64,000 bases of DNA from positions 3,410,001-3,474,000 of the forward strand of contig NC_134468.1 of assembly GCF_964194025.1 (NCBI RefSeq), written 5' to 3'. A model generated the notes under the pieces. That model was not told where the DNA came from. It saw nothing but the letters and a program-made list of their open reading frames with translations, and ran no database searches. The position numbers were made by a program, and so were the translations under genes. The DNA is from Convolutriloba macropyga. Lineage: Eukaryota. Below, piece by piece: positions 4,493 to 53,999 of the stretch; the first letter of the stretch is position 1; every line of letters begins with the position of its first letter.

Positions 4493-7400
4493 TCAGTAAT
4501 TTTCTTCATGATAATCATCATCTTCTTCATCATCCACTTCCATCGCCTCGTCATCAATGTAGGGATTCTTTTGCCTCAATTCTTTTCTCTCCTGATAGAT
4601 TACACGGCTCCCCAATTCATTAAGATGAACGATATCACTACTTTCCCAAGGTCTTGCAGATGTGAAGAATTCAATAAAGAGCGACCATTCAGGGAAACCT
4701 CTGATAGACCGTCCGAAGAATCGTAGCTCTCCCCACCAGCGCTTCCATTTTCTTCATCTGAACTTGATGACGATGATGACGTGTCGTCTCCATCGTTCAC
4801 AAAGCTTTCATTTTCTTCATCGACTGCTCGGTTCTGCTCAAGCCAAAAGTGTCCGTGAGGCAGGGTGGTGATTCCATCGCTCAGAATGAAACGCTTATCA
4901 TCAAAGCTATTAAGGGCTACCTTGTTTGTCATAGAGATCTGGATCTGATGGTTCTCTGCGTGTATCCGTGTAATAGGTGCCCGCTGACTTGACTTCTCAA
5001 AAAGACAACTGCGGTATTTATCGTGATGGAGACTTTTTTTGACACTACGTTGAACGCCTTTTGCACTCTGCTTCACTCCATCCACATATTTAATGCTGTA
5101 CATCTTTGATCTCAGCAAAACGCATTCTTCCAAGACTTGCCCATTCAATTCGTCTGTCATAGTGAGTGGAACCTTTTTGTTCGTTGAATCATACAAAACG
5201 TGGTCTGATGGATAATCCGAAAGATCAAGCAGGTGCTTAAATTGCGCCATATCTTCGTAGAGATCATTCGTTTCAACCCGATAAAGTACAGAGTCGGTGT
5301 CCTTGTAAACAACTAGTATTCGATTACCGTATCTCGGCCTCATTCGATCATAGTCGAAACCATAGCGCGCCAATTTGGATAGATCTAAAATTGCTGCACC
5401 AACAGGAGTTGGTTTGTCCCACGTTATGACTGGTTCCGACATAAAAACCGAACATAAGTTCTCACTAATAATTTTGAACGACTTGAAATTTGGTTTTGAT
5501 GTCAGCTGTTCGGCTTTTCTTTCTGTTCCCACAAAATAAATTTGCCTACGATTGCGTTTGTTCTCCATTGTCTTTCCAAAACAGGCATTGGACATTAGCT
5601 TGTAGAAGTTTTTCTCAAATGTGGTTTTAGCTTGCTTCCTCATAACTGTGTTCTTTTCGATGTACGAACGTAGCCACTCAGATTGTTTGAAGCGAAGAGC
5701 TCGATGAATTTTCTTAATGATGAGGCCGTGCCGGACATAGAATTTCAAGTTGTTGATGTGACAAACATAGTGATTCTTATCAAACAGAGTTTCAACCAAC
5801 TTTGGAACCTGCTCAGATCGAGACCTATTCAGATTTAGTTGAGAGCTGTATGATGACAGCCAGTCGGTTTGAATACAAAGTTTTTCAGGTGCTAGAGGGA
5901 GATCTTGATGCGGAATATGCATGGATGCTGGATATTCTAAATCCACCTCAACAAAGTAAGCGTAGTCGTCATCTTCTCGGTATTTTAAAAGATCACTCTC
6001 GGAAATAGATTCAACCCAAGTACATTCACATAGAGGCAGGGATTTCATCATTATTCCAGCATAGAGAGACGTAACATCAAAGAAAGCTCCAAAAACTGAT
6101 GTCTCATCTTCATTAAAAGTATTCAAGTACTTGTTGTTTGCTTTGAAAAACCGCAAAGAGCCAACACCGTTCAAACCCCCTCTTATTGCTTTCTCACAAA
6201 ACAAGAGTTTCTCAATGTCATCAAGCAGCTCAATTTTCACTTTTGTTGTGATGAGCATTGCGTCCCAGCTGAGATTAGGTGCACTGTAGAAATGAGCAGG
6301 ATCTAGTTGGTACACTTTCATACAAACATCTCTGAACTTTTCAAAAACGTCAGCGAGAACAAAAACATCAATTTTAAGATATGCATCGTGATAGTCTCCA
6401 AAATCATTACAATCCAATAACTCATAAATTTGCATCGCTTCGTTATATTGCTGCTCTGAAATATCAATTTTGCCGGTTAGGGTGTTTCTCCACTCCATGC
6501 CAAATACAGGAAATGGGGCGTTGAATTTTTCGTGGCTGTCGAGGTAGCTATATGGGAAGTACGCTTTTTTCGCAATTTTTCTAAAATCATTGTCATTGAG
6601 ATGTTGAAACCCTGAGCGTAGTATTCGAAGATCTTCTTCTTCAAGAGTTTTACTGAGCGCGTCAAGGCTGGAAGCCATAAAGTTCATGCTGTCGAGAAAC
6701 CGTAGTTCATGTTTAATTGTTTTTTCTTTACCACGTTTGTCAAAATACGTTCGGATCGGAACCTTGATGGAGAAAGAAATAAACGTTTCTTCGGTGCGAG
6801 CTATCGCCGAAAGTTCTTCTTTGTCTTCAAGCGTCAAGTGTTTAATTATGTGATGCGAGTCGTAACGAGAAAAGTTGTGGAAAAAAATAGGAACAAAAGA
6901 ACCAGCAGTAACCATTAGGTTACATTTCGAGTGCGCTACACCTATAATTTTTCCCGTTAAATGACAGTGATGCACCACTTGGACCTCAACATCGTCGTCT
7001 GGAGAGAATTCATTTTCACAAATGCAACACGGTTCTGCCCAATTGTCAATCATTAACTGTCTTGCTATATCGGTCATCTCTAGCTTTCGATGCCGTTGTC
7101 GCTCTTCCGCTTTCCACCTCAACCAATGCCTCATTGTGTCCAAGAACTGTTTGATGCAATTTTCTCCTCTGTAAAACGTTTCCTTTGCAACTTTACCATC
7201 TCGAGCGTCAACCAGAACGGCTCCAAAACTGCACGGATATTGTTGTTCAATTACATGCGTAGCCGCAGCACCACTGTTGAGAGCACCGTGCTGGTAATTA
7301 GAAAGTACATCCTCGCAGTCATCTGTTTTAACATTGAACGCTTCGAGGTCGGCGTAAATTACAAATGGACATTTTGGTGTTTTGTGCCAGCTTGTAAACT

Positions 7401-8801
7401 CAGTGACGGCTCCTTTAGGTGGCATCTCAATCATTAGGGGTTGTTGGTCAAGGCAAAGCTGTCGGTGCTGTTGCATTTTTGTTCGCGCAACACTCTGCAG
7501 ACATCGCTCACAAAATTTTCTGAGACTGTTTTTAGAACTAGCTGTTCTCTCAGACCGCAGAATTGTCTTCAAAAGCCTGTCTAGATTTTTTATTAAACAA
7601 AAATGAGACTTTTTGTCGTCATTCAAAAGCAGAAGATTGATTGGTTTTCCTCCCCCTTTGATCTTTGTGAGATATGCTGGGTAAATAGTGCGAGGTTCTT
7701 CAAAAGCGTAAACGTTAATTTTCACTCTATTCTCTTTTTCAAAACGCGGTATTTGGCTGAGGGGCATTGGCATACGCTCTTTGTTGAACCTCAATTTTTT
7801 CAAATGACGAGTACATCTTTTCGGCCGTTCTTGATTGTTACGCAATGGAAATAGAGCCACCAGTACGCAATAAATGAAACAGAGACCATCTGCAAAATTT
7901 TTGATATTAAGAACAGTCCTTCGGAGAGGCTGAAGCAGCCTTGGTGTTGGAATAAAGCTAGCAGGACGCAGAGGTCGATAATTGCATAGCTTTATGTCAA
8001 TCAGTTGGAGCCTCCTAATAACCCATCCGCTCCCAGCTGTGCAAAATATTGATTTGCGTCAAAACTTGGTCAACATGCTGATAGTATTGATCAGAGTCCA
8101 AATGAGGTGAGACATTTTCCATGTTACTATTAAAAAAAACAAGACGTTTTGTCACCTTTAAGCGGCTTTTCGAACTCAATTTGAAGACAGAGTGAGAATT
8201 TCATAGGGTCAGAGGTCATCTTTGACTTCACAAATTCGCAAAACGCACTTTCATTTGTCACCAAAAATTCGAAGAGATCATAATTCTCCTCGTCGTTGAT
8301 AGCAAATCGAAACGTGCGGAAAAAACCTTTCACCGATCTCTTTTCATTGTGCAAATGACTTATTCCTAATGTCCTTGATTCGGTCGCTGGTTGTTGTCTG
8401 ACATTATGATTAACAAGTGAATATTCCCCCAACGCGTTTTGTGTGCCGAAAAAGCTCTGACAGCTCGATCATTTCAAGTATCGTGCAAAATTATGCTGCG
8501 TCTTTAGATGTCGCACTAAGTTACGAGCTAAGGAAAACACGCTTGTACAATGCCCGCAACAAAAATTTGTTGTTGGTTCGTTGGGATGCTGTTGACGTTT
8601 ATGAATAGTGAGTTTATAACGACTTGCAAAGGATTCATTACAATTTGTGCGTTTGTGCATCATATTGGAACAGTAGGTGGCCTGAAACAACCAAAATTTT
8701 AAGTTGAAGATAAGCATTCGTAACTTTAGACGGATTTTTTTAAAAAAATTATAAAGATGTAAAATACTGCCATCACTAGAATTTAGTCTATTATGGCTCA
8801 A
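4493..8801 (-). pseudogene. Protein-primed family B DNA polymerase with N-terminal C2H2 fingers and an inserted endonuclease VII-like domain
   Basis: 1086-aa ORF 4600-7860 with ExoI (IYADLEA), ExoII (FFHNFSRYD), ExoIII (YLKIDVFVL), PolA (FDVTSLY), PolB (KLMSNACFGK), PolC (YKDTDS) and CCIC..HHCHLTG...AHSKCNL; the same frame continues upstream (GSGWVIRR...SFIPTP...LNIKN..DGLCFIYCVL); frameshifts ~8045 and ~8135; TGA at 8469-8471 in finger 2; probable shift ~4640 to an acidic tail ending at 4493. Confidence 0.92.
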
Positions 8802-46737: not shown

Positions 46738-48270
46738 TCAATAAGTGTCATAATAAGGATCGTATGACCCATCATTTCCAACAATTTTCTCGATCTTCTG
46801 GATGGCGCCAGGAATCCTGTAAAACATTCGACAGGATTCGTTCAACACAATAAAGGCTTCCTCTGGGGTCCCAGTTTCCATAACCATTGGAAATCCTTGA
46901 CTTTTGAGAGGCTCTGGGTTCAGAACTGCCCTCAGAAACACATCATTTTTATTCTCAATCAGTTGCATTATGTACTCCGCATGGCCAAGTTGCTCCTTCA
47001 AACTATTTTCTTTCTCGCCAAATATTCTTTCCTTGATTTTCGGCAGCAAATGAGAAATTTCAAGACCATCAATTTCAGAGAAAAATTTCTCAATGACATT
47101 ACATATTTTTATGTCTGCTTCATATTTCGCAACAATTCGCAATTTGAGAAGCAAAAGAGCTACCACATGCGCAAGAGAAACGTTTTCAGAGCTTTTTTCT
47201 AGTAAAAGCACAGGACTCTCATATCTATTCTCATTTTTTAGCCAAAGCCAATCACCTTGTTGGGTACTTTGAGGAACATCATCCCAATTATAATCGAAGT
47301 TTGGATCTATCGTGATCCACCATTTGACGAAGTTGTAGGCATCGTCATCTCTATTCAAATTAATCAATATGAACGGAACCTTTTCACGCAACCCCAGGGC
47401 ATCCCAGTGAATTAATCTTAATAGCTCAAAGTAGTGCGCCAGACCTGCTTCGTACATATGCTCATACTCCTCTTCATGGGCCATATCCAAGTATGAATTT
47501 GCTAAATAACGCCTAGTATTGCAATAATCCCTCAGAAACGGGTTGCTCCAAATACGTCCAACATTTTCTCCTTCAAAGGCTTCAATTCCTACTTGCCTAA
47601 CAGCTTTCTCCTTTTCCCGTCTCACTTGACCTTCCATGCGCTGGATTGCCCTACAATGTTTTTTGTGAATGCTCCAGTATTCTTTCTGACATTCCACAGA
47701 GCAGAATTTGACCATCCTACATCCAGTACATAGTCGTAGGGTTCCCGAATCACCACACGTAAAATTATCACCCATATAATTTTGACAACGATCCCGTCTC
47801 GTCTGCAGACTCATGTCCTTTCCATTATAAAGTTCCAACTCAAAGTTTACGCCAAAACTAGCTGCCTTGTTAGTGTTGTTTTTTGGCGCAGTATTATTCG
47901 AAGGAAACATAAATTTGATCTCGGACAACTTCTTTCCATCGCGCAAGTTGTCAATCTTATTGTAAATAGCCTCTGTAAGCTCGTCAATAACCAGGAAGTC
48001 CGCCACCTTTAGAAGTCGGAATAGCGACTCCATGTTGTCCGGTAATTTTTGATCACCAAACCACGTCTTAATCATTCTAGCTTCTTTTATCGCAACAAGA
48101 GGCAGCTCAATAGGCTCATCATTATTGCACCAGTCCAACTTTGAGAGCATTGCCTCTATGTTCTTACACATTGCACATTGGGCTTTGGTGAGATGGAACC
48201 TCTCGCCATCAGAAGAAAGGAATACGACGACATCTTGCGATACCTTCTTAACCTCAGGTTCCATCCCCAC
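46738..48270 (-). CDS. SKP1-like/zf-MYND/helical-domain fusion protein, paralog A (~510 aa)
   Basis: N-term VVFLSSDGERF...IEAML...PIELPLV...W...LFRLLKVADFLVIDEL...GKKLSEIKFMF aligns with SKP1 (LQSSDGEIF, PVPLPNV, LFELILAANYLDIKGL, GKTPEEIRKTF); MYND CTGCRMVKFCSVECQKEYWSIHKKHC; C-term HYFELLRL..D..GLRE.VP..LI.L.RDDD.YNFVKWW; intact ORF; ATG at 48264; acceptor tttcag at 48271-48272. Confidence 0.85.
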   Translation of the reverse strand: MGMEPEVKKVSQDVVVFLSSDGERFHLTKAQCAMCKNIEAMLSKLDWCNNDEPIELPLVAIKEARMIKTWFGDQKLPDNMESLFRLLKVADFLVIDELTEAIYNKIDNLRDGKKLSEIKFMFPSNNTAPKNNTNKAASFGVNFELELYNGKDMSLQTRRDRCQNYMGDNFTCGDSGTLRLCTGCRMVKFCSVECQKEYWSIHKKHCRAIQRMEGQVRREKEKAVRQVGIEAFEGENVGRIWSNPFLRDYCNTRRYLANSYLDMAHEEEYEHMYEAGLAHYFELLRLIHWDALGLREKVPFILINLNRDDDAYNFVKWWITIDPNFDYNWDDVPQSTQQGDWLWLKNENRYESPVLLLEKSSENVSLAHVVALLLLKLRIVAKYEADIKICNVIEKFFSEIDGLEISHLLPKIKERIFGEKENSLKEQLGHAEYIMQLIENKNDVFLRAVLNPEPLKSQGFPMVMETGTPEEAFIVLNESCRMFYRIPGAIQKIEKIVGNDGSYDPYYDTY

Positions 48271-49177
48271 CTGAAATACTTTTCAATGTCAATCAAGAGT
48301 AATCATGCAATTAACTTGTCTTGCTATGGTTTGACTTAAATCAAATGCCGGCCAAACCCTCTGGCGAAACTCATTAGACTCTAAACGAGATTATCAAGAC
48401 TATTGCAGCGAGATTCAAGAAGAAAAGGAAGAAATCAAACGAAAAGCCAGATTAAACCCTGAGCTGACAGGCCTTTAAAACATCCATTCAACAAAAAAAA
48501 ACTACTTCACATATTGAATTTGATCAGCATCGTCAAAAACAGAACCAACTCAGGTCGGAACAATTGCTCTCCGACGAAAGATTAGATAGGGCCTTATAAA
48601 TTAAAAATTAGACAACGGGTGATTTCACTTTTTACAACGGCTCGGCGCATTGCTGCAGTGTTTTGCCGCCAAATAGAGCACACAATAAGTTTGTATTGCA
48701 GAACACAGTCATTTATAGCATAAATAGAGCGCATAGACTACTGCTAATCGCCGAACTAATTTATTATCGGATTGAAACAAAAACAGGCCGATTGAACCGA
48801 TTCATTGATGACAAGTGTAGAAACCAAAAGTCTAATATTCTAAACATACAGTGTGCGAGCTGGCAAACAAAACTGCCCGTTAATACTATTAAAGATATTG
48901 AAGTCATCTATCCAAACTTAGCCACCATTATTGTACAGCTGACGTAATCAGTAACAATTTCATCGGATTCTTGACGCACCATTCGGAAAAACGGATATCT
49001 CTGCTCGCAGTTCTGCTATACTTGCAAATACCAAAATCTTGCATTTGTCGAAAACGCCAGAAAAACTGCCATTGCATAATTGTTTTATGTCTTCTCAGCA
49101 GCTCTGATTAGCAGCACGCTTAGAGACTAGCAGTTAAATTAAAGCGTCAAACAAAAAAGTGGTCAAGCAAAAAATCG

Positions 49178-49377
49178 GGATCTTTTCTGTTTTGCCTCCT
49201 CAGCCCTATATAACCAGTCGATTTGCACCCCCCAAATATGTATTTTTTGTTCCTTAGAGATCCGTACTTTTTAGTTTTTTAGTATACGAAAGTGTATAAA
49301 ATGCAAACAATATGCTATAAGATGCATAAGTGAGTTGGGAAGGCAAATAGAAATGGGGGCAATAGCAGAAAAGATCC
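49178..49377. mobile_element. 200-bp MITE (GGATCTTTTC TIR) nested in a HINE
   Basis: ggatcttttctgttttgcc ... ggcaatagcagaaaagatcc interrupts the HINE motif ggtcaagcaaaaaatcg|cataaaaagaccg, with an approximate 8-9-bp duplication. Confidence 0.75.
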
Positions 49378-50701
49378 AAAAAAATTGCATAAAAAGACCG
49401 CACGACTCATAGAAACGACAAACTTTGTTGAGATCACGAGCAATTAAATAATTAGATCTGAGAAACTTTAAAAAATTTCAGCTAGATGTTGAGATGTCCG
49501 CAATGTACTGCAAAGCTCCCCAAACAGCCTCCGAATAGGTTGAGACATTATTTTACCTTAATTTCTCATTAAAATAGTTTGATAAAAAAAGATTAGTGAG
49601 TAGTAAGGTAAGTAACAGGTGACAAAAAAATAATTACGCAAGATACAAGCAAATATTCCTCCGACGACGCAAGGCACGCAATTAAAAAAAAACAATTATG
49701 CATGGATTAGAGCTGATTTAAGTGTGTCATACGACGTAAAAAAAGTTGGGGACAAACGTCAAAAAAAGACTCGCGAAAAACAACCCAACTGCAACACTTG
49801 TGCGGCAAAATCTTGGCATTGGTTTATTTTTAATAAAATAGTTGAGCAATCAAATAATCACCCGAACATTAACTTAATTACAAAAAAAATTGAGGCCAAA
49901 ACCACTCAATTTATAGCGGAAACAAGTTCTCTGCAACGCAATAGCGAATTGAAATACACTACGAAAAATTTTTTACACATCTTAAAAATTAATATTGACC
50001 ATTGACGAAAAAAATGCAACCACTTACAAAACTCAAAAACAAAGTTCTTCAGAATTTATGCAAAAGTGATTCAAAAATGGCAACTAAAAATACTTGTGAG
50101 CAGAAACACTCGAATTCATTGGATACATATTATCAGGTAAACTTGGCAAATAGGCAAAGTAATCTGAATTTCTAAGACAGACAAACTGCTCATCGAGGAC
50201 TGATGATGACCGAAACTCCCTCAGAAAAATAGAAAAAAAACAGGAGAACCTCAAGCAAATGGAAAAGGATAATGTTGAAATAATTAATACAAAAATATCA
50301 ATTTATCAAATTTGAGAATTATTAAAAATTAAAACAAAAAAACAAGTAATTATTGAGGTTGAATAAATCGATGGCACAATTTAATTGAGACATCAACTTG
50401 TCAGGAAGAGAGACCAAAATCTAAATCCAAACACGAAATCGCCAAAACTGTATAATTGCTGCAAAAACTGACATTTGGAACCAATTAAATTTAATTCCAA
50501 AGCTTCACAAGAAAGTACACTGAGCAACCAACCACAAATTGAATAAGACCAATTTCTAATGAGAGCAAAAAAGGTATTCCAAAAAGATTAACAAAACCGA
50601 GGAGAAAAAATAAAGAAACTAAATTGGTTTAAAAATTGGCCGAAATTTTATAAATGTGTAAAAATTTCTCACAAAAATCCAAGAAATCAATGCAAGTATT
50701 C

Positions 50702-50963
50702 AACATAACCGACTAACGTCGGGCGAATTGCTCTCAAACGACCGGTGAGCGGTCATTTGAGAGTCTCCAAAAAGTTTGAGCTGTGAAACAGAGCTGAAAG
50801 GCTCTAAGAGCACTTAATGCCCGCTGGGCGCTACCTGTTTATCCCGTTTTTGAGGACGAAAAGTCAAAAGCGTCAGACGAAAAATCGGTCAAGCGAAAAA
50901 TCGCATTAAAAAAGACCAACAGGACTAATATAATTGCTACAAACTTCGTTTGAGAGCAATTAA
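50702..50963 (-). mobile_element. Complete ~260-bp HINE (non-autonomous Helentron)
   Basis: Perfect 15-bp subTIRs aattgctctcaaacg (50726-50740) and cgtttgagagcaatt (50947-50961); partial IR aattgctacaaac (50932-50944); terminal stem-loop ccgac-taac-gtcgg (50709-50722); TT ends on the minus strand. Confidence 0.85.
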
Positions 50964-51190
50964 AAAAGCACCTAACTTAATTAGATTACTAATAAGTCAC
51001 CAAAGATACAACCTTGCAGAAATTATTTTAAAAAACACACTATTATATCAAGGCATAGGGATATTTCTACTGCCTCGGTAAAATACCCATAACCACACAA
51101 TACAACCATAACCAAAAAAGCCAAAGGGACCAAAAGAACGATCAAATTCTAGTAGACATGCACATTATTTATCACGAAAAATCAACTCAC

Positions 51191-51306
51191 CTCAAATACG
51201 TTAATCATTAAACCTAGCGCGTGAAAAAAAGCGCAAGAATTTCCTTCAGTCCGTTAAATTTTTCCACTAGCAAATTTACTCTTTCGTTTTTGGATCAGAA
51301 CGCCGC
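51191..51306 (-). other. Candidate small upstream exon (5'UTR plus MINVFE), possibly spliced to paralog A
   Basis: Acceptor tttgtgttcag, strong donor GAG|GTGAGT at 51190; ATG at 51208 gives 6 codons in phase with GTG at 48270. Confidence 0.35.
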
Positions 51307-51795
51307 CTGAACACAAATTTCTTGTGGTAAAAACAAACAAATTTGAATTCATCCACAGAGAAAGAATTCTATTACTATAACTTGAACAATATTTTTGTAA
51401 GCTCGTTCAATCAAAATATAAGGCATCGCCACAACACTAGATCAACAAGTCCCAATTGATAAAAAATTTTACATACTAAAAAATATTAACTCTACATCAA
51501 TGCTCAAATATATTTCCAAACATACAACATTAGATTGTATGTTAAGCTGAAAAAAAACCAAATGAAATACTCGACGTACATTTCATATGCCTGCTAGATA
51601 TCCTCCGCAATTTATTAACTCCAATACAATCGGTCGGTCGATAAGAGCTGAACAAACAAAATAAACTACAACTAATAATTCTTACAAACTCTCAACAACC
51701 AAAACGGTGACTAAATAAATATCACTGAAATTATTTGAAACGAAAGGAAACAGAAAGGAATGGCGACGGATTGAAACATTTTTGCTTAATGTTCT

Positions 51796-53313
51796 TTAAA
51801 CGCTACCATAGGCAGGATCGTATGAATGGTCACTTCCAACAATTTTGGCAATCTTCTCCTTTGCGCCCGGAATGCTGGCCAATACTCGACATGAATCTTT
51901 TAGTACAAGAAACGCTTCCTCAGGTGTTCCAGGTGTGCTGGTCTTTGGATACTGTTGGCTAGTGAGAGGTAACGGATTTAGAACAGCCCTCAGAAACACC
52001 CTATTTTTGCTCTCAATCACCTGCATTATATATTCAGCGTGGCTCAGTTGATCTTTCAAAATGTCTTCGTCAGCTCCAAATATCCTTTCCCTAATTTTCG
52101 GAAGCAAATGAGAAATTTCCAGATTTTCAAATTGGGCAAGAAAATTTTCAACAGCGCAGCAGATTTTCAGGTCTGCTTCATACTTTGCAACAATCCTCAA
52201 CTTGAGTACCAGCAGTGCGACAACGTGCGCCGAAGAGTCGCTCCCTGGGTGACTTTCTAATAACAGCGAAGGATTCTCAAATCTATTTTGATTTGTGAAC
52301 CACAACCAATCACCTTCTTCACTATTTTCTCTATGACTCCAATCGTGTTCACCGTTTGCATCTTTTGACATCCACCATTTGACAAAATTGTAACAATCGT
52401 CATCTCTCTCCAATTTAATCAAAACAAAGGGAACAGTTTTACGCAGACCCTGAGCGTCCGTGTGGTTCAACCTCAACAACTCTAAGTAGTGGGCTAGACC
52501 TGTCTCATATATATGGTCATAGTCTTCTTCATGGGCCATCTCGAAGTAGGCGTCTGCCACAAAACGCCTAGCATAGCAATAAACTCGTCCAAATACGTTG
52601 CCCCAAACATTCCTAGCATTTTCTCCCTCAAAGGCGTCAACTCCCATCCGCTCAATAGCTTCTGCTCGCTTACTCTCCATCGCACTTTCCATCATTTGAA
52701 TCCCTTCACAATACTCCTTGTGTACACTCCAATACTCTTTCTGGCACTCCCGAGAGCAGAATTTGACCATTTTACAGCCATTGCACAGAAGCAAGACACC
52801 AGAATCACCACAATTGAGATTCTCACTCCTATAATTTTGGCATTGATTGCGGCCATTTCGCAGACTAATATCTTTCCCATTATACAGCGGAAGTTCAGAG
52901 CTAATTCCCACATCTACTTCACAACTACCGTTGCTGTTTGACGCAAATTCAGTTGTTGGAAAAATAGCTTTGATATCAGACAATTTCTTTCCATTGCAGA
53001 GAAAGCGAACCTTGCTGTAAATAGCATCAGTCAGCTCTTCAATCAAAAGAAAATCGGCAACCTTCAATAGACGGAATAGAGATTCAGGATTTTCTGGCAG
53101 TATACTTTCAGAAAACCATGTTTTAACCAACTTCACTTCTTCAATTGTAACAAGAGGCAATTGAAGTGGCGTATCATTGCACAGGTCCAACTTCGAGAGC
53201 ATTGCCGCTATGTTCATACACTTTGCACATTGGTCTTTGGTGAGACGGAACCTCTCGCCTTCGCACGAAACGAAGACTACATGATCTTCGAAGATAACTC
53301 TCTCCTGTTCCAT
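51796..53313 (-). CDS. SKP1-like/zf-MYND/helical-domain fusion protein, paralog B (~505 aa)
   Basis: Colinear with paralog A over its full length (VVFVSCEGERF, LFRLLKVADFL, CNGCKMVKFCSRECQKEYWSVHKEYC, RDDDCYNFVKWW, FLRAVLNP.PL.SQ, GTPEEAF); intact ORF; likely ATG at 53313. Confidence 0.85.
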   Translation of the reverse strand: MEQERVIFEDHVVFVSCEGERFRLTKDQCAKCMNIAAMLSKLDLCNDTPLQLPLVTIEEVKLVKTWFSESILPENPESLFRLLKVADFLLIEELTDAIYSKVRFLCNGKKLSDIKAIFPTTEFASNSNGSCEVDVGISSELPLYNGKDISLRNGRNQCQNYRSENLNCGDSGVLLLCNGCKMVKFCSRECQKEYWSVHKEYCEGIQMMESAMESKRAEAIERMGVDAFEGENARNVWGNVFGRVYCYARRFVADAYFEMAHEEDYDHIYETGLAHYLELLRLNHTDAQGLRKTVPFVLIKLERDDDCYNFVKWWMSKDANGEHDWSHRENSEEGDWLWFTNQNRFENPSLLLESHPGSDSSAHVVALLVLKLRIVAKYEADLKICCAVENFLAQFENLEISHLLPKIRERIFGADEDILKDQLSHAEYIMQVIESKNRVFLRAVLNPLPLTSQQYPKTSTPGTPEEAFLVLKDSCRVLASIPGAKEKIAKIVGSDHSYDPAYGSV

Positions 53314-53999
53314 CTTCAGCCGGAAATCATTTACATCGCATTCAATGTTCAGTGTGAGAATCAAAACTGCCCACAAACAAGTTATAACTAATCACAGCAA
53401 ACTATTTCTCATAATGTCAATCAAAAAAATTCATACAAAGCCACATAAACAAATGCTGCTGATAGGAAGGACAACAAATCTTGAGATGACATGCACAAAA
53501 ACATTCAAGAAAAACAATCTAGACTGTAATAGAAACAGAGAACACATTTCTCGGAACAAAGTTGAAGCAGATTTTGGAAATCGATGGCATCAATACGCTA
53601 ATGAACGTCAATCAAAATTTGAAAATATTTCTCAGAAGATTTTCCGGAGATAATAGATCCTTTTTTGATTTTTTCTATGACAAACAGTTTTCATACAGGC
53701 CGTAAAAAAGCATTTATTGTCTCCGGAAAGTCTTTTCGAAAAATTCGCCTCTAAATGTCCTTTAGACTTTAGGGTCCTCAATTGAAACAAAGTACTCCAA
53801 TCATGTAGAGTCAGAGTAACTATTTTGTCAAAATAATCGCACAAAAATACAAAATTGCTGAAATGAAATATACAGAATTCGATTCCAAAAAAAAGAATTG
53901 ATCAGTTGTAAAACGTTAAGTTTTCGTCGAATTAGAAAAAGGAGCTGCAAAAAAACTACATCGGAGATCAGAGACAGTCCGAGAAAACATCAAAAAAAA

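Follow-up and report, generated by a model that had tools for sequence, protein, structure and literature searches.

A 64,000-nt window of the genome of Convolutriloba macropyga (NCBI RefSeq assembly GCF_964194025.1, contig NC_134468.1, positions 3,410,001 to 3,474,000 of the forward strand), in which all positions below are counted from the first letter, contained two neighboring genes whose predicted proteins join an N-terminal SKP1-like domain, a MYND zinc finger, and a C-terminal helical domain in one chain. This three-domain anatomy can be regarded as close to certain. SKP1 is ordinarily a small stand-alone adaptor, and the cullin-1-RING ligases (CRL1) use two chains, SKP1 and an F-box protein, where the cullin-3-RING ligases (CRL3) use one, a BTB protein. 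What is new here is a SKP1-family adaptor domain in a newly recognized fused architecture. From the sequence features set out below, we predict, as a plausible rather than a probable mechanism, that the two proteins are single-chain, F-box-independent CRL1 receptors.

Two intact tandem genes with the same three-domain layout

Both genes lay on the minus strand, in AT-rich eukaryotic DNA (GC content, ~0.37) from a 1.18-Gb animal genome. The intronless coding sequence (CDS) of gene 1 spanned positions 46738 to 48264 and encoded 508 amino acids (aa), with the stop codon at 46738 to 46740; its open reading frame (ORF) as listed, 46738 to 48270, opened with GTG, and the likely ATG lay inside it, at 48264. 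The intronless CDS of gene 2 spanned positions 51796 to 53313 and encoded 505 aa, with the ATG at 53313 and the stop codon at 51796 to 51798; its ORF (51796 to 53376) reached upstream beyond this ATG, as far as a TTG at 53376. The two intact ORFs of ~510 aa that the initial annotation had described were thus borne out. The two proteins were 59% identical when aligned end to end, and a six-frame search of the whole 1.18-Gb genome returned gene 1 and gene 2 as the only copies. The genes are old tandem paralogues.

In gene 1, the SKP1-family BTB/POZ domain corresponded to aa 10 to 120 (47905 to 48237, minus strand) and stopped after the equivalent of helix H7, as placed by Pfam, PDB, Foldseek, profile, and alignment evidence. 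It was followed by a linker, aa 121 to 157 (47794 to 47904, minus strand), delimited by the alignment and by the blocks of predicted local distance difference test scores (pLDDT) in an AlphaFold2 (AF2) model; by the MYND zinc finger, aa 158 to 204 (47653 to 47793, minus strand), assigned by PF01753; and by the C-terminal ST7/TPR-like helical domain, aa 205 to 508 (46741 to 47652, minus strand), defined by the model and its structure matches. Linker residues 130 to 140 were of low confidence in the AF2 model, and after this low-confidence part the alignment showed a conserved Y-x-G-x-D-x-x-L motif, which precedes the MYND finger also in relatives that lack the SKP1 domain. The corresponding parts of gene 2, all on the minus strand, were the SKP1-like domain at about 52954 to 53286 (homology to gene 1), the MYND finger at about 52708 to 52848 (PF01753), and the helical domain at 51799 to 52707 (homology to gene 1). 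Pfam, profile, and AF2 evidence agreed on the order of SKP1-like domain, MYND finger, and helical domain, as originally proposed.

Assignment of the N-terminal domain to the SKP1 family

Several lines of comparison indicated that the N-terminal domain adopts a true SKP1-family BTB/POZ fold and not a generic BTB fold; the profile E-values and the Foldseek matches both single out SKP1. Taken individually, gene 1 scored 18.5 bits against Skp1_POZ (PF03931), under the Pfam cut-off of 21.9, and relatives of the same architecture cleared that cut-off: P0005 with 29.4 bits, P0012 with 25.2 bits, and P0029 and P0157 with 36.8 and 36.7 bits, respectively. The first 127 aa of gene 1 alone matched SKP1 chains of several species among the solved structures, with E-values of 5e-4 to 5e-3, over both SKP1 halves. 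A profile built from eight N-domains and searched against solved structures matched SKP1 with an E-value of 1.7e-21 over profile positions 12 to 119, Elongin C with E-values of 8e-7 to 4e-5, and BTB zinc-finger and Kelch proteins with E-values of 1e-6 to 3e-4, so that SKP1 stood 14 to 15 orders of magnitude ahead of Elongin C and other BTB proteins. The full-length AF2 model of gene 1, built with a 148-sequence alignment, had a pLDDT of 92.1 and a predicted template modeling score (pTM) of 0.91, and in a Foldseek search of the PDB its best 50 matches were all SKP1 chains (probability, 1.00; template modeling [TM] score by target, 0.52 to 0.76; identity, 20 to 27%). The expectation that the N-terminus would align with both SKP1 subdomains over its first ~125 aa therefore held by structure, profile, and fold matches alike.

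The SKP1 motifs quoted in the initial annotation were all found in gene 1, as LSSDGERF, PIELPLV, KTW, LFRLLKVADFLVIDEL, and GKKLSEIKFMF. The last of these marked the end of the match to SKP1: the alignment ended at GKTPEEIRKTF in SKP1 and GKKLSEIKFMF in the window proteins, after which the latter continued with a proline and an unrelated linker of low confidence. Neither the final part of H7 nor any of H8 was present, and the acidic loop was short, in keeping with the shortened loop and absent last helix that had been noted at the outset. PF01466, the Skp1 C-terminal family that covers H5 to H8, was correspondingly incomplete; the best relative, P0005, matched about the first 28 of its 48 positions, at 19.4 bits against a cut-off of 22.3. 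The Pfam scan detected no long-form dimeric BTB domain (PF00651) in the window proteins, and in the relatives this family reached 13 to 17 bits, below the cut-off. F-box families (PF00646 and PF12937) were likewise absent from the window proteins in a Pfam scan to E-values of up to 1.

One discordant match, to the Phytophthora RxLR effector PSR2, was the top hit when the N-domain was compared with the PDB as a single sequence (E-value, 1.7e-6). This value added up five weak matches of repeat units (i-Evalues of at least 0.6 apiece) to one helical segment, KTWF..LP..ESLF.LLK.AD, encoded at 47935 to 48081 (gene 1 aa 62 to 110). PSR2 was not among the best 60 matches of the N-domain profile search, and the match is probably due to chance.

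MYND finger and helical domain

The MYND finger cleared the Pfam cut-off for zf-MYND (PF01753; 22.7 bits) in both proteins, with 34.4 bits in gene 1 and 33.6 bits in gene 2. All eight zinc ligands were present in gene 1 (C160, C170, C179, C182, C188, C192, H200, and C204), the first pair being spaced in an unusual manner, as C-x9-C against the customary C-x2-C. Residues 205 to 508 were all-helical, and their pLDDT was 94 when they were modeled together with the MYND finger alone, which substantiates the finger followed by a ~300-aa helical domain that had been read from the sequence. Pfam gave no assignment for the helical domain, either in the window proteins (E-values of up to 1) or in 134 relatives (E-values of up to 0.01). 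Among solved structures, the matches were generic TPR-like ones only, and the best, 9ofv_v, a chain of the RQC complex, had a Z score of 9.4, below the meaningful level for helical repeats. A likeness to ST7 was weak among Swiss-Prot models (E-value, ~1e-2) and clearer in the ESM Atlas, where the matches included fungal MYND proteins with a TM score of 0.84 and bacterial ST7/TPR proteins with a TM score of 0.72.

The MYND finger and the helical domain formed a unit with family-wide conserved motifs visible in the alignments (LRL, NRD-DAY, NP-PL, and IPGA). When 1.8 billion cluster representatives were searched exhaustively with a profile, 216 representatives of this unit were retrieved at an E-value of <1e-30 and 987 at <1e-10, most of the latter being 350 to 390 aa long, beginning at the MYND finger, and lacking the SKP1-like domain. 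Named relatives came from Ascomycota, Basidiomycota, oomycetes, and diatoms, which the ESM Atlas and AlphaFold DB gave as uncharacterized "MYND-type domain-containing proteins," and from one ctenophore, and literature searches turned up no paper on the family. Because the unit is also fused to other domains elsewhere, for example to RNase H in fungi, it behaves as a portable module, and this fits a portable recognition unit. By these comparisons, the window genes belong to a small subfamily of eukaryotic "MYND finger plus ST7/TPR-like helical domain" proteins that gained an N-terminal SKP1 domain cut after H7.

Distribution and ancestry of the fused architecture

A hidden Markov model of the N-domain family identified about nine clusters besides the window genes, namely, P0002, P0158, P0005, P0012/P0155/P0156, P0029/P0157, P0048, P0159, P0007 (partial), and P0090. 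The one named member was the hypothetical protein KAL5263974.1 (P0157) of the ctenophore Mnemiopsis leidyi, and the others were unnamed, with environmental sequences among them. The Mnemiopsis protein resembled the window proteins in having the three domains in the same order (its Skp1_POZ match scored 36.7 bits and its zf-MYND match 29.6 bits, in agreement with its precomputed Pfam annotation of Skp1_POZ plus zf-MYND) and in being encoded by a single exon; on a chromosome record of 17 Mb, the neighbors of this gene on either side were ordinary genes with introns. It differed in being only ~32% identical to gene 1, in falling in a separate clade, and in having N-Y in H5 and TLDR at the PxPN site, and it too is uncharacterized. 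The initial annotation had taken the architecture to match no characterized protein. That part stands, since full-text literature searches found neither a paper describing the three-domain architecture nor a characterized protein that has it; the architecture is not unique to the window, being present in the clusters listed above.

When the MYND-helical parts of 111 proteins were placed on a maximum-likelihood tree, the sequences that bear SKP1 clustered: they required 3 label changes, as compared with 10.6 when labels were shuffled, and none of 500 shuffles gave so low a number. The window pair grouped with P0002/P0158 with a support of 100, and the ctenophore-type group formed another starred clade. 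The nearest relatives of the window genes were other SKP1-bearing sequences, including the ctenophore gene, and not fungal ones; most relatives carried no taxon label. Horizontal acquisition from fungi or diatoms may have taken place but is not required to account for the genes. The starred branches may be compatible with a single origin of the SKP1 fusion. Overall, the three-domain architecture is old, maintained, and rare.

Cullin- and F-box-facing surfaces and the proposed receptor mechanism

In the BTB superfamily, the PxPN motif of strand B3 is a Cul1 contact of Skp1, and the F-box-binding surface is made by the two extra C-terminal helices of Skp1 (Stogios 2005; PMC1257465). Human Skp1 with two mutated H5 residues, which are N-Y in SKR-1/2, loses Cul1 binding, and an isoleucine at the end of H7 together with a tryptophan in H8 is required for the C-terminal, F-box-type interface and for F-box-dependent function (PMC10866564). 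Of the 11 members in the alignment of the fused family, 10 had [N/D]-[Y/F] as the H5 dipeptide, which is D89-F90 in the window proteins. The animal's own canonical SKP1 reads AANFLDI in H5, that is, N-F where Caenorhabditis elegans SKR-1/2 have N-Y, and a phenylalanine at the second position is for this reason native to the species. The isoleucine at the end of H7 and the tryptophan of H8 had no counterpart in the family, the domain stopping at ...IKFMF-P. The F-box-side interface thus appears to be without its C-terminal half and the cullin side to be half kept, and the loss of the H7-end and H8 part of the F-box interface makes an F-box-independent protein a fitting interpretation.

In the mechanism that we propose, the MYND/TPR module would be the ligand-recognition part, the SKP1-like domain would plug this module directly into the N-terminus of cullin-1, and the protein would be to CRL1 what BTB proteins are to CUL3, namely, a substrate receptor in one chain, here independent of an F-box. 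The components that such a receptor would meet were located in the genome. Exons that we take, by their likeness to the human sequences, to belong to CUL1, CUL2, CUL3, and CUL4 were recognized; CUL1 lay at G000 C4:54.15 Mb, with its N-terminal domain split over several exons, of which one spanned no more than the region of the second contact helix and the first lay >2.5 kb off. Two canonical SKP1 loci were found, one at L021:1489-1710 (G000 C3:19.43 Mb; the AANFLDI copy) and the other at G000 C1:10.125 Mb. Because the animal has CUL1 and these two canonical loci, a CUL1 partner exists and the window genes are additional to the normal SKP1/cullin machinery.

Several observations weigh against cullin-1 binding. 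The PxPN site read ELPL in gene 1 (aa 53 to 56) and QLPL in gene 2; DLPN occurred only in P0005, the nearest relatives had PLAT or PLTT, and the ctenophore-type clade had TLDR or TIDR, and with the motif this degenerate, the subfamily as a whole does not conserve the PxPN part of the Cul1 interface. The helix that contains the H5 dipeptide belongs to the core, and folding alone may account for the dipeptide's retention. The compactness of the AF2 body, with the pTM given above, allows that the SKP1-like domain may merely be docked in cis.

These points bear directly on a second explanation, which we consider rather unlikely, namely, that the SKP1 fold is used here without a cullin and outside any ubiquitin ligase, the N-domain holding the MYND-TPR part in cis, dimerizing, or binding a partner through the hydrophobic H5-H7 groove. 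SCF-independent use of SKP1 (that is, outside the SKP1-cullin-F-box complex) has been documented, in that SKR-1/2 employ the interfaces that form SCF also for dimerization and for the binding of meiosis-specific proteins (PMC10866564). The strongest conservation of the fused family was in H5 and H6, where L91 and L96 were invariant, and F82, which sits at the site of the SKP1 phenylalanine of the dimer and F-box core, was mostly hydrophobic across the family; the degenerate PxPN motif and the pTM of the full-length model, which suggests a fixed arrangement of the domains, point the same way. However, the Cul1-binding dipeptide has been retained in all family members but one, the domain is specifically SKP1-like in its matches, and the documented cases involve canonical SKP1 itself and no dedicated paralogue. 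Docking in cis gained no support from a complex prediction with gene 1 split into two chains (aa 1 to 126 and aa 141 to 508), whose score of 0.21, with the mark at 0.34, counts neither way.

Transcription of the two genes

Four public runs of one study, here called X1 to X4, contained the locus. Runs X1, X3, and X4 covered genes and spacers alike and so behaved as DNA; the small run X2 covered the genes only, with a spacer depth of essentially zero, and its designation as RNA is deduced from this coverage pattern, the library type not being on record. One X2 contig of 1,626 nt with a depth of 125 ran colinearly through all of gene 2 and short untranslated regions (UTRs), at 51717 to 53342 on the minus strand, without a gap or a mismatch. 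Because this contig spans all of the domain junctions, the three domains lie on one gene 2 mRNA, provided that X2 is RNA; coverage across the junctions, which the initial annotation had named as a check, was thereby obtained for gene 2 from a single RNA-like contig. Under the same proviso, both genes are transcribed and gene 2 is intronless. On gene 1, X2 contigs covered the 5' part, at 47944 to 48272. There, the contig left the genome sequence at the AG (48271 to 48272, minus strand) of a "tttcag" splice acceptor (within 48271 to 48280), which precedes the ATG of gene 1 by 6 nt, and continued for ~21 further letters that had no match. Since the match ends at an acceptor AG, these letters probably derive either from a spliced leader, which would fit trans-splicing, or from an upstream exon of the 5' UTR.

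Selection, null alleles, and copy number

Between gene 1 and gene 2, the synonymous divergence (dS) was ~1.4 and the overall ratio of nonsynonymous to synonymous divergence (dN/dS) was 0.19; for the SKP1-like domain alone it was 0.21 and for the helical domain 0.20. The MYND finger had the lowest dN, and its dS was saturated. These ratios show that purifying selection has acted on each domain through most of the history of the paralogues. Clustering on the tree, the dN/dS values, the colinear contig, and the single-exon Mnemiopsis gene indicate together that the fusion is maintained.

Other individuals carried disrupted copies. In runs X3 and X4, and likewise in L002, an independent ENA contig 97 to 99% identical to the window, the reading frame of the helical domain of gene 2 was broken by a 1-nt deletion at 52226 (CDS nt 1088), the point at which P0003 also ended out of frame. 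Run X4 and L002 additionally carried a 2-nt deletion at 53078 to 53079 (CDS nt 232), which shifted the frame within the SKP1-like domain of gene 2. In the L002 copy of gene 1, ~28 nt were missing near codon 70, and the gene was broken after nt 1163 by ~1.9 kb that included a FLYWCH-domain ORF. L002 also held a third paralogue, at L002:17720-19210, which was ~54% identical to gene 1, was absent from the window and from the reference genome, and had a MYND finger that was out of frame and contained a stop. The gene 2 indels were supported by two data sets, and the defects of gene 1 and of the third copy by one assembly. The gene cluster is polymorphic for null alleles and copy number. All three L002 copies look broken and gene 2 is frameshifted in X3 and X4, and this tolerance of loss counts against the proposed receptor. 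With gene 2 a frameshifted null allele in other individuals, the findings suit a gene cluster that is dispensable and of fast turnover better than they suit a core subunit of a ligase. Under the receptor mechanism proposed above, the cluster would be dispensable and rapidly turned over in its host species, and in this it would recall the adaptor families that are specific to lineages in C. elegans and in plants and not a housekeeping subunit.

The same disruptions in gene 2, gene 1, and the third copy could be taken a step further, to mean that these are lineage-specific genes heading to loss, transcribed and without present function in this species, and the allelic differences were only mildly biased (synonymous to nonsynonymous, 8:9 in gene 1 and 12:20 in gene 2). 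We regard this reading as improbable: in the reference, neither copy is disrupted anywhere in its 1.5 kb, despite their high dS and with a low dN/dS, both genes are transcribed in the reference individual as far as X2 can be read as RNA from its coverage, and the architecture persists in a ctenophore and several other clades. It is very improbable that the truncated SKP1 domain serves as a competitor or decoy, occupying CUL1 or residual F-box partners without delivering a substrate and so damping SCF, because, although the cullin-side H5 residues are kept, the F-box-side H7-end and H8 residues are lost, and canonical SKP1 genes are present to compete with, a decoy would not need the conserved 380-aa MYND-TPR module, on which purifying selection acts just as it does on the SKP1-like domain.

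Other features of the window

Between the two genes, at 50700 to 51100 and also at 49100 to 49500, the window contained a very high-copy transcribed repeat with many joints and A-rich loose ends. Its word depth was ~0.5 to 1.8 million in the DNA-like runs, against 30 to 60 in the flanks, and ~800 to 1,100 in the RNA-like run. An Rfam search of the intergenic interval from 48300 to 51790 gave no match. Elsewhere, at 4600 to 7860 on the minus strand, a 1,086-aa ORF matched the type-B organellar/viral DNA polymerase family PF03175 (E-value, 1e-19) and, weakly, an endonuclease VII; by these matches it is a Polinton/Maverick-like element.

Implications and comparison with known systems

If the proposed mechanism is true, a SKP1-fold protein with its own recognition module would blur the division between CRL1 and CRL3 and would represent a second, independent route to single-chain cullin receptors. 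Even without cullin binding, the family would add another example to the uses of the SKP1 fold outside SCF. The fusion also provides a first functional lead for the orphan MYND plus ST7/TPR-like family, which has ~1,000 cluster representatives and no characterized member: by "Rosetta-stone" logic, the joining of SKP1 to MYND-TPR would, if the mechanism is true, hint at a partnership in trans with SKP1/SCF for the unfused members. The broadest form of the proposal, a class of F-box-independent CRL1 receptors that binds cullin-1 and is old enough to be common to ctenophores and this animal, with the orphan family hinted to work with SKP1/SCF in trans, is one that we regard as doubtful. The importance of the genes is tempered by their being dispensable in some individuals of this species.

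Among characterized systems, canonical SKP1 is the closest to the N-terminal domain. The window proteins share with it the BTB/POZ core and the SKP1-specific helices H5 to H7, together with the motifs SSDGE-F, L-P-x-V, W, LF-L, [AS][ND][FY]L-I, and GK...EI...F. Canonical SKP1 is a stand-alone protein of ~160 aa, whereas the N-domain of the window proteins is joined to ~380 aa, contains neither H8 nor the end of H7, and has a short acidic loop, ELPL or QLPL in place of PxPN, and D-F in place of N-Y. Elongin C is a BTB-fold cullin adaptor that consists of the core fold only, without the C-terminal helices of SKP1 (PMC1257465), and the window domain likewise ends well before the last helix of SKP1; however, its sequence link to Elongin C is far weaker (E-values of ~1e-6 to 1e-5 against 1e-21), and Elongin C is a stand-alone protein that works with Elongin B and BC-box receptors.

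In plan, the proposed receptor would resemble the CUL3 BTB adaptors of the MATH-BTB and BTB-Kelch types, which combine an N-terminal cullin-binding BTB fold and a C-terminal recognition domain in one chain (PMC4403949, PMC1257465). Those adaptors have a long dimeric BTB domain, in contrast to the SKP1-type fold of the window proteins, for which the expected cullin would be CUL1 and not CUL3. The MYND-type proteins of fungi, oomycetes, and diatoms, such as TMW67641.1 of Pythium oligandrum and FisN_28Lh054 of Fistulifera solaris, have the same MYND plus ~300-aa helical module as the window proteins; they differ in that almost all lack the SKP1-like domain, most are 350 to 390 aa long, some carry other fused domains, RNase H among them, and none is of known function. 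A remoter likeness is offered by the bacterial SEC-C plus ST7/TPR proteins, in which another small zinc motif, SEC-C, is paired with an ST7-like TPR domain.

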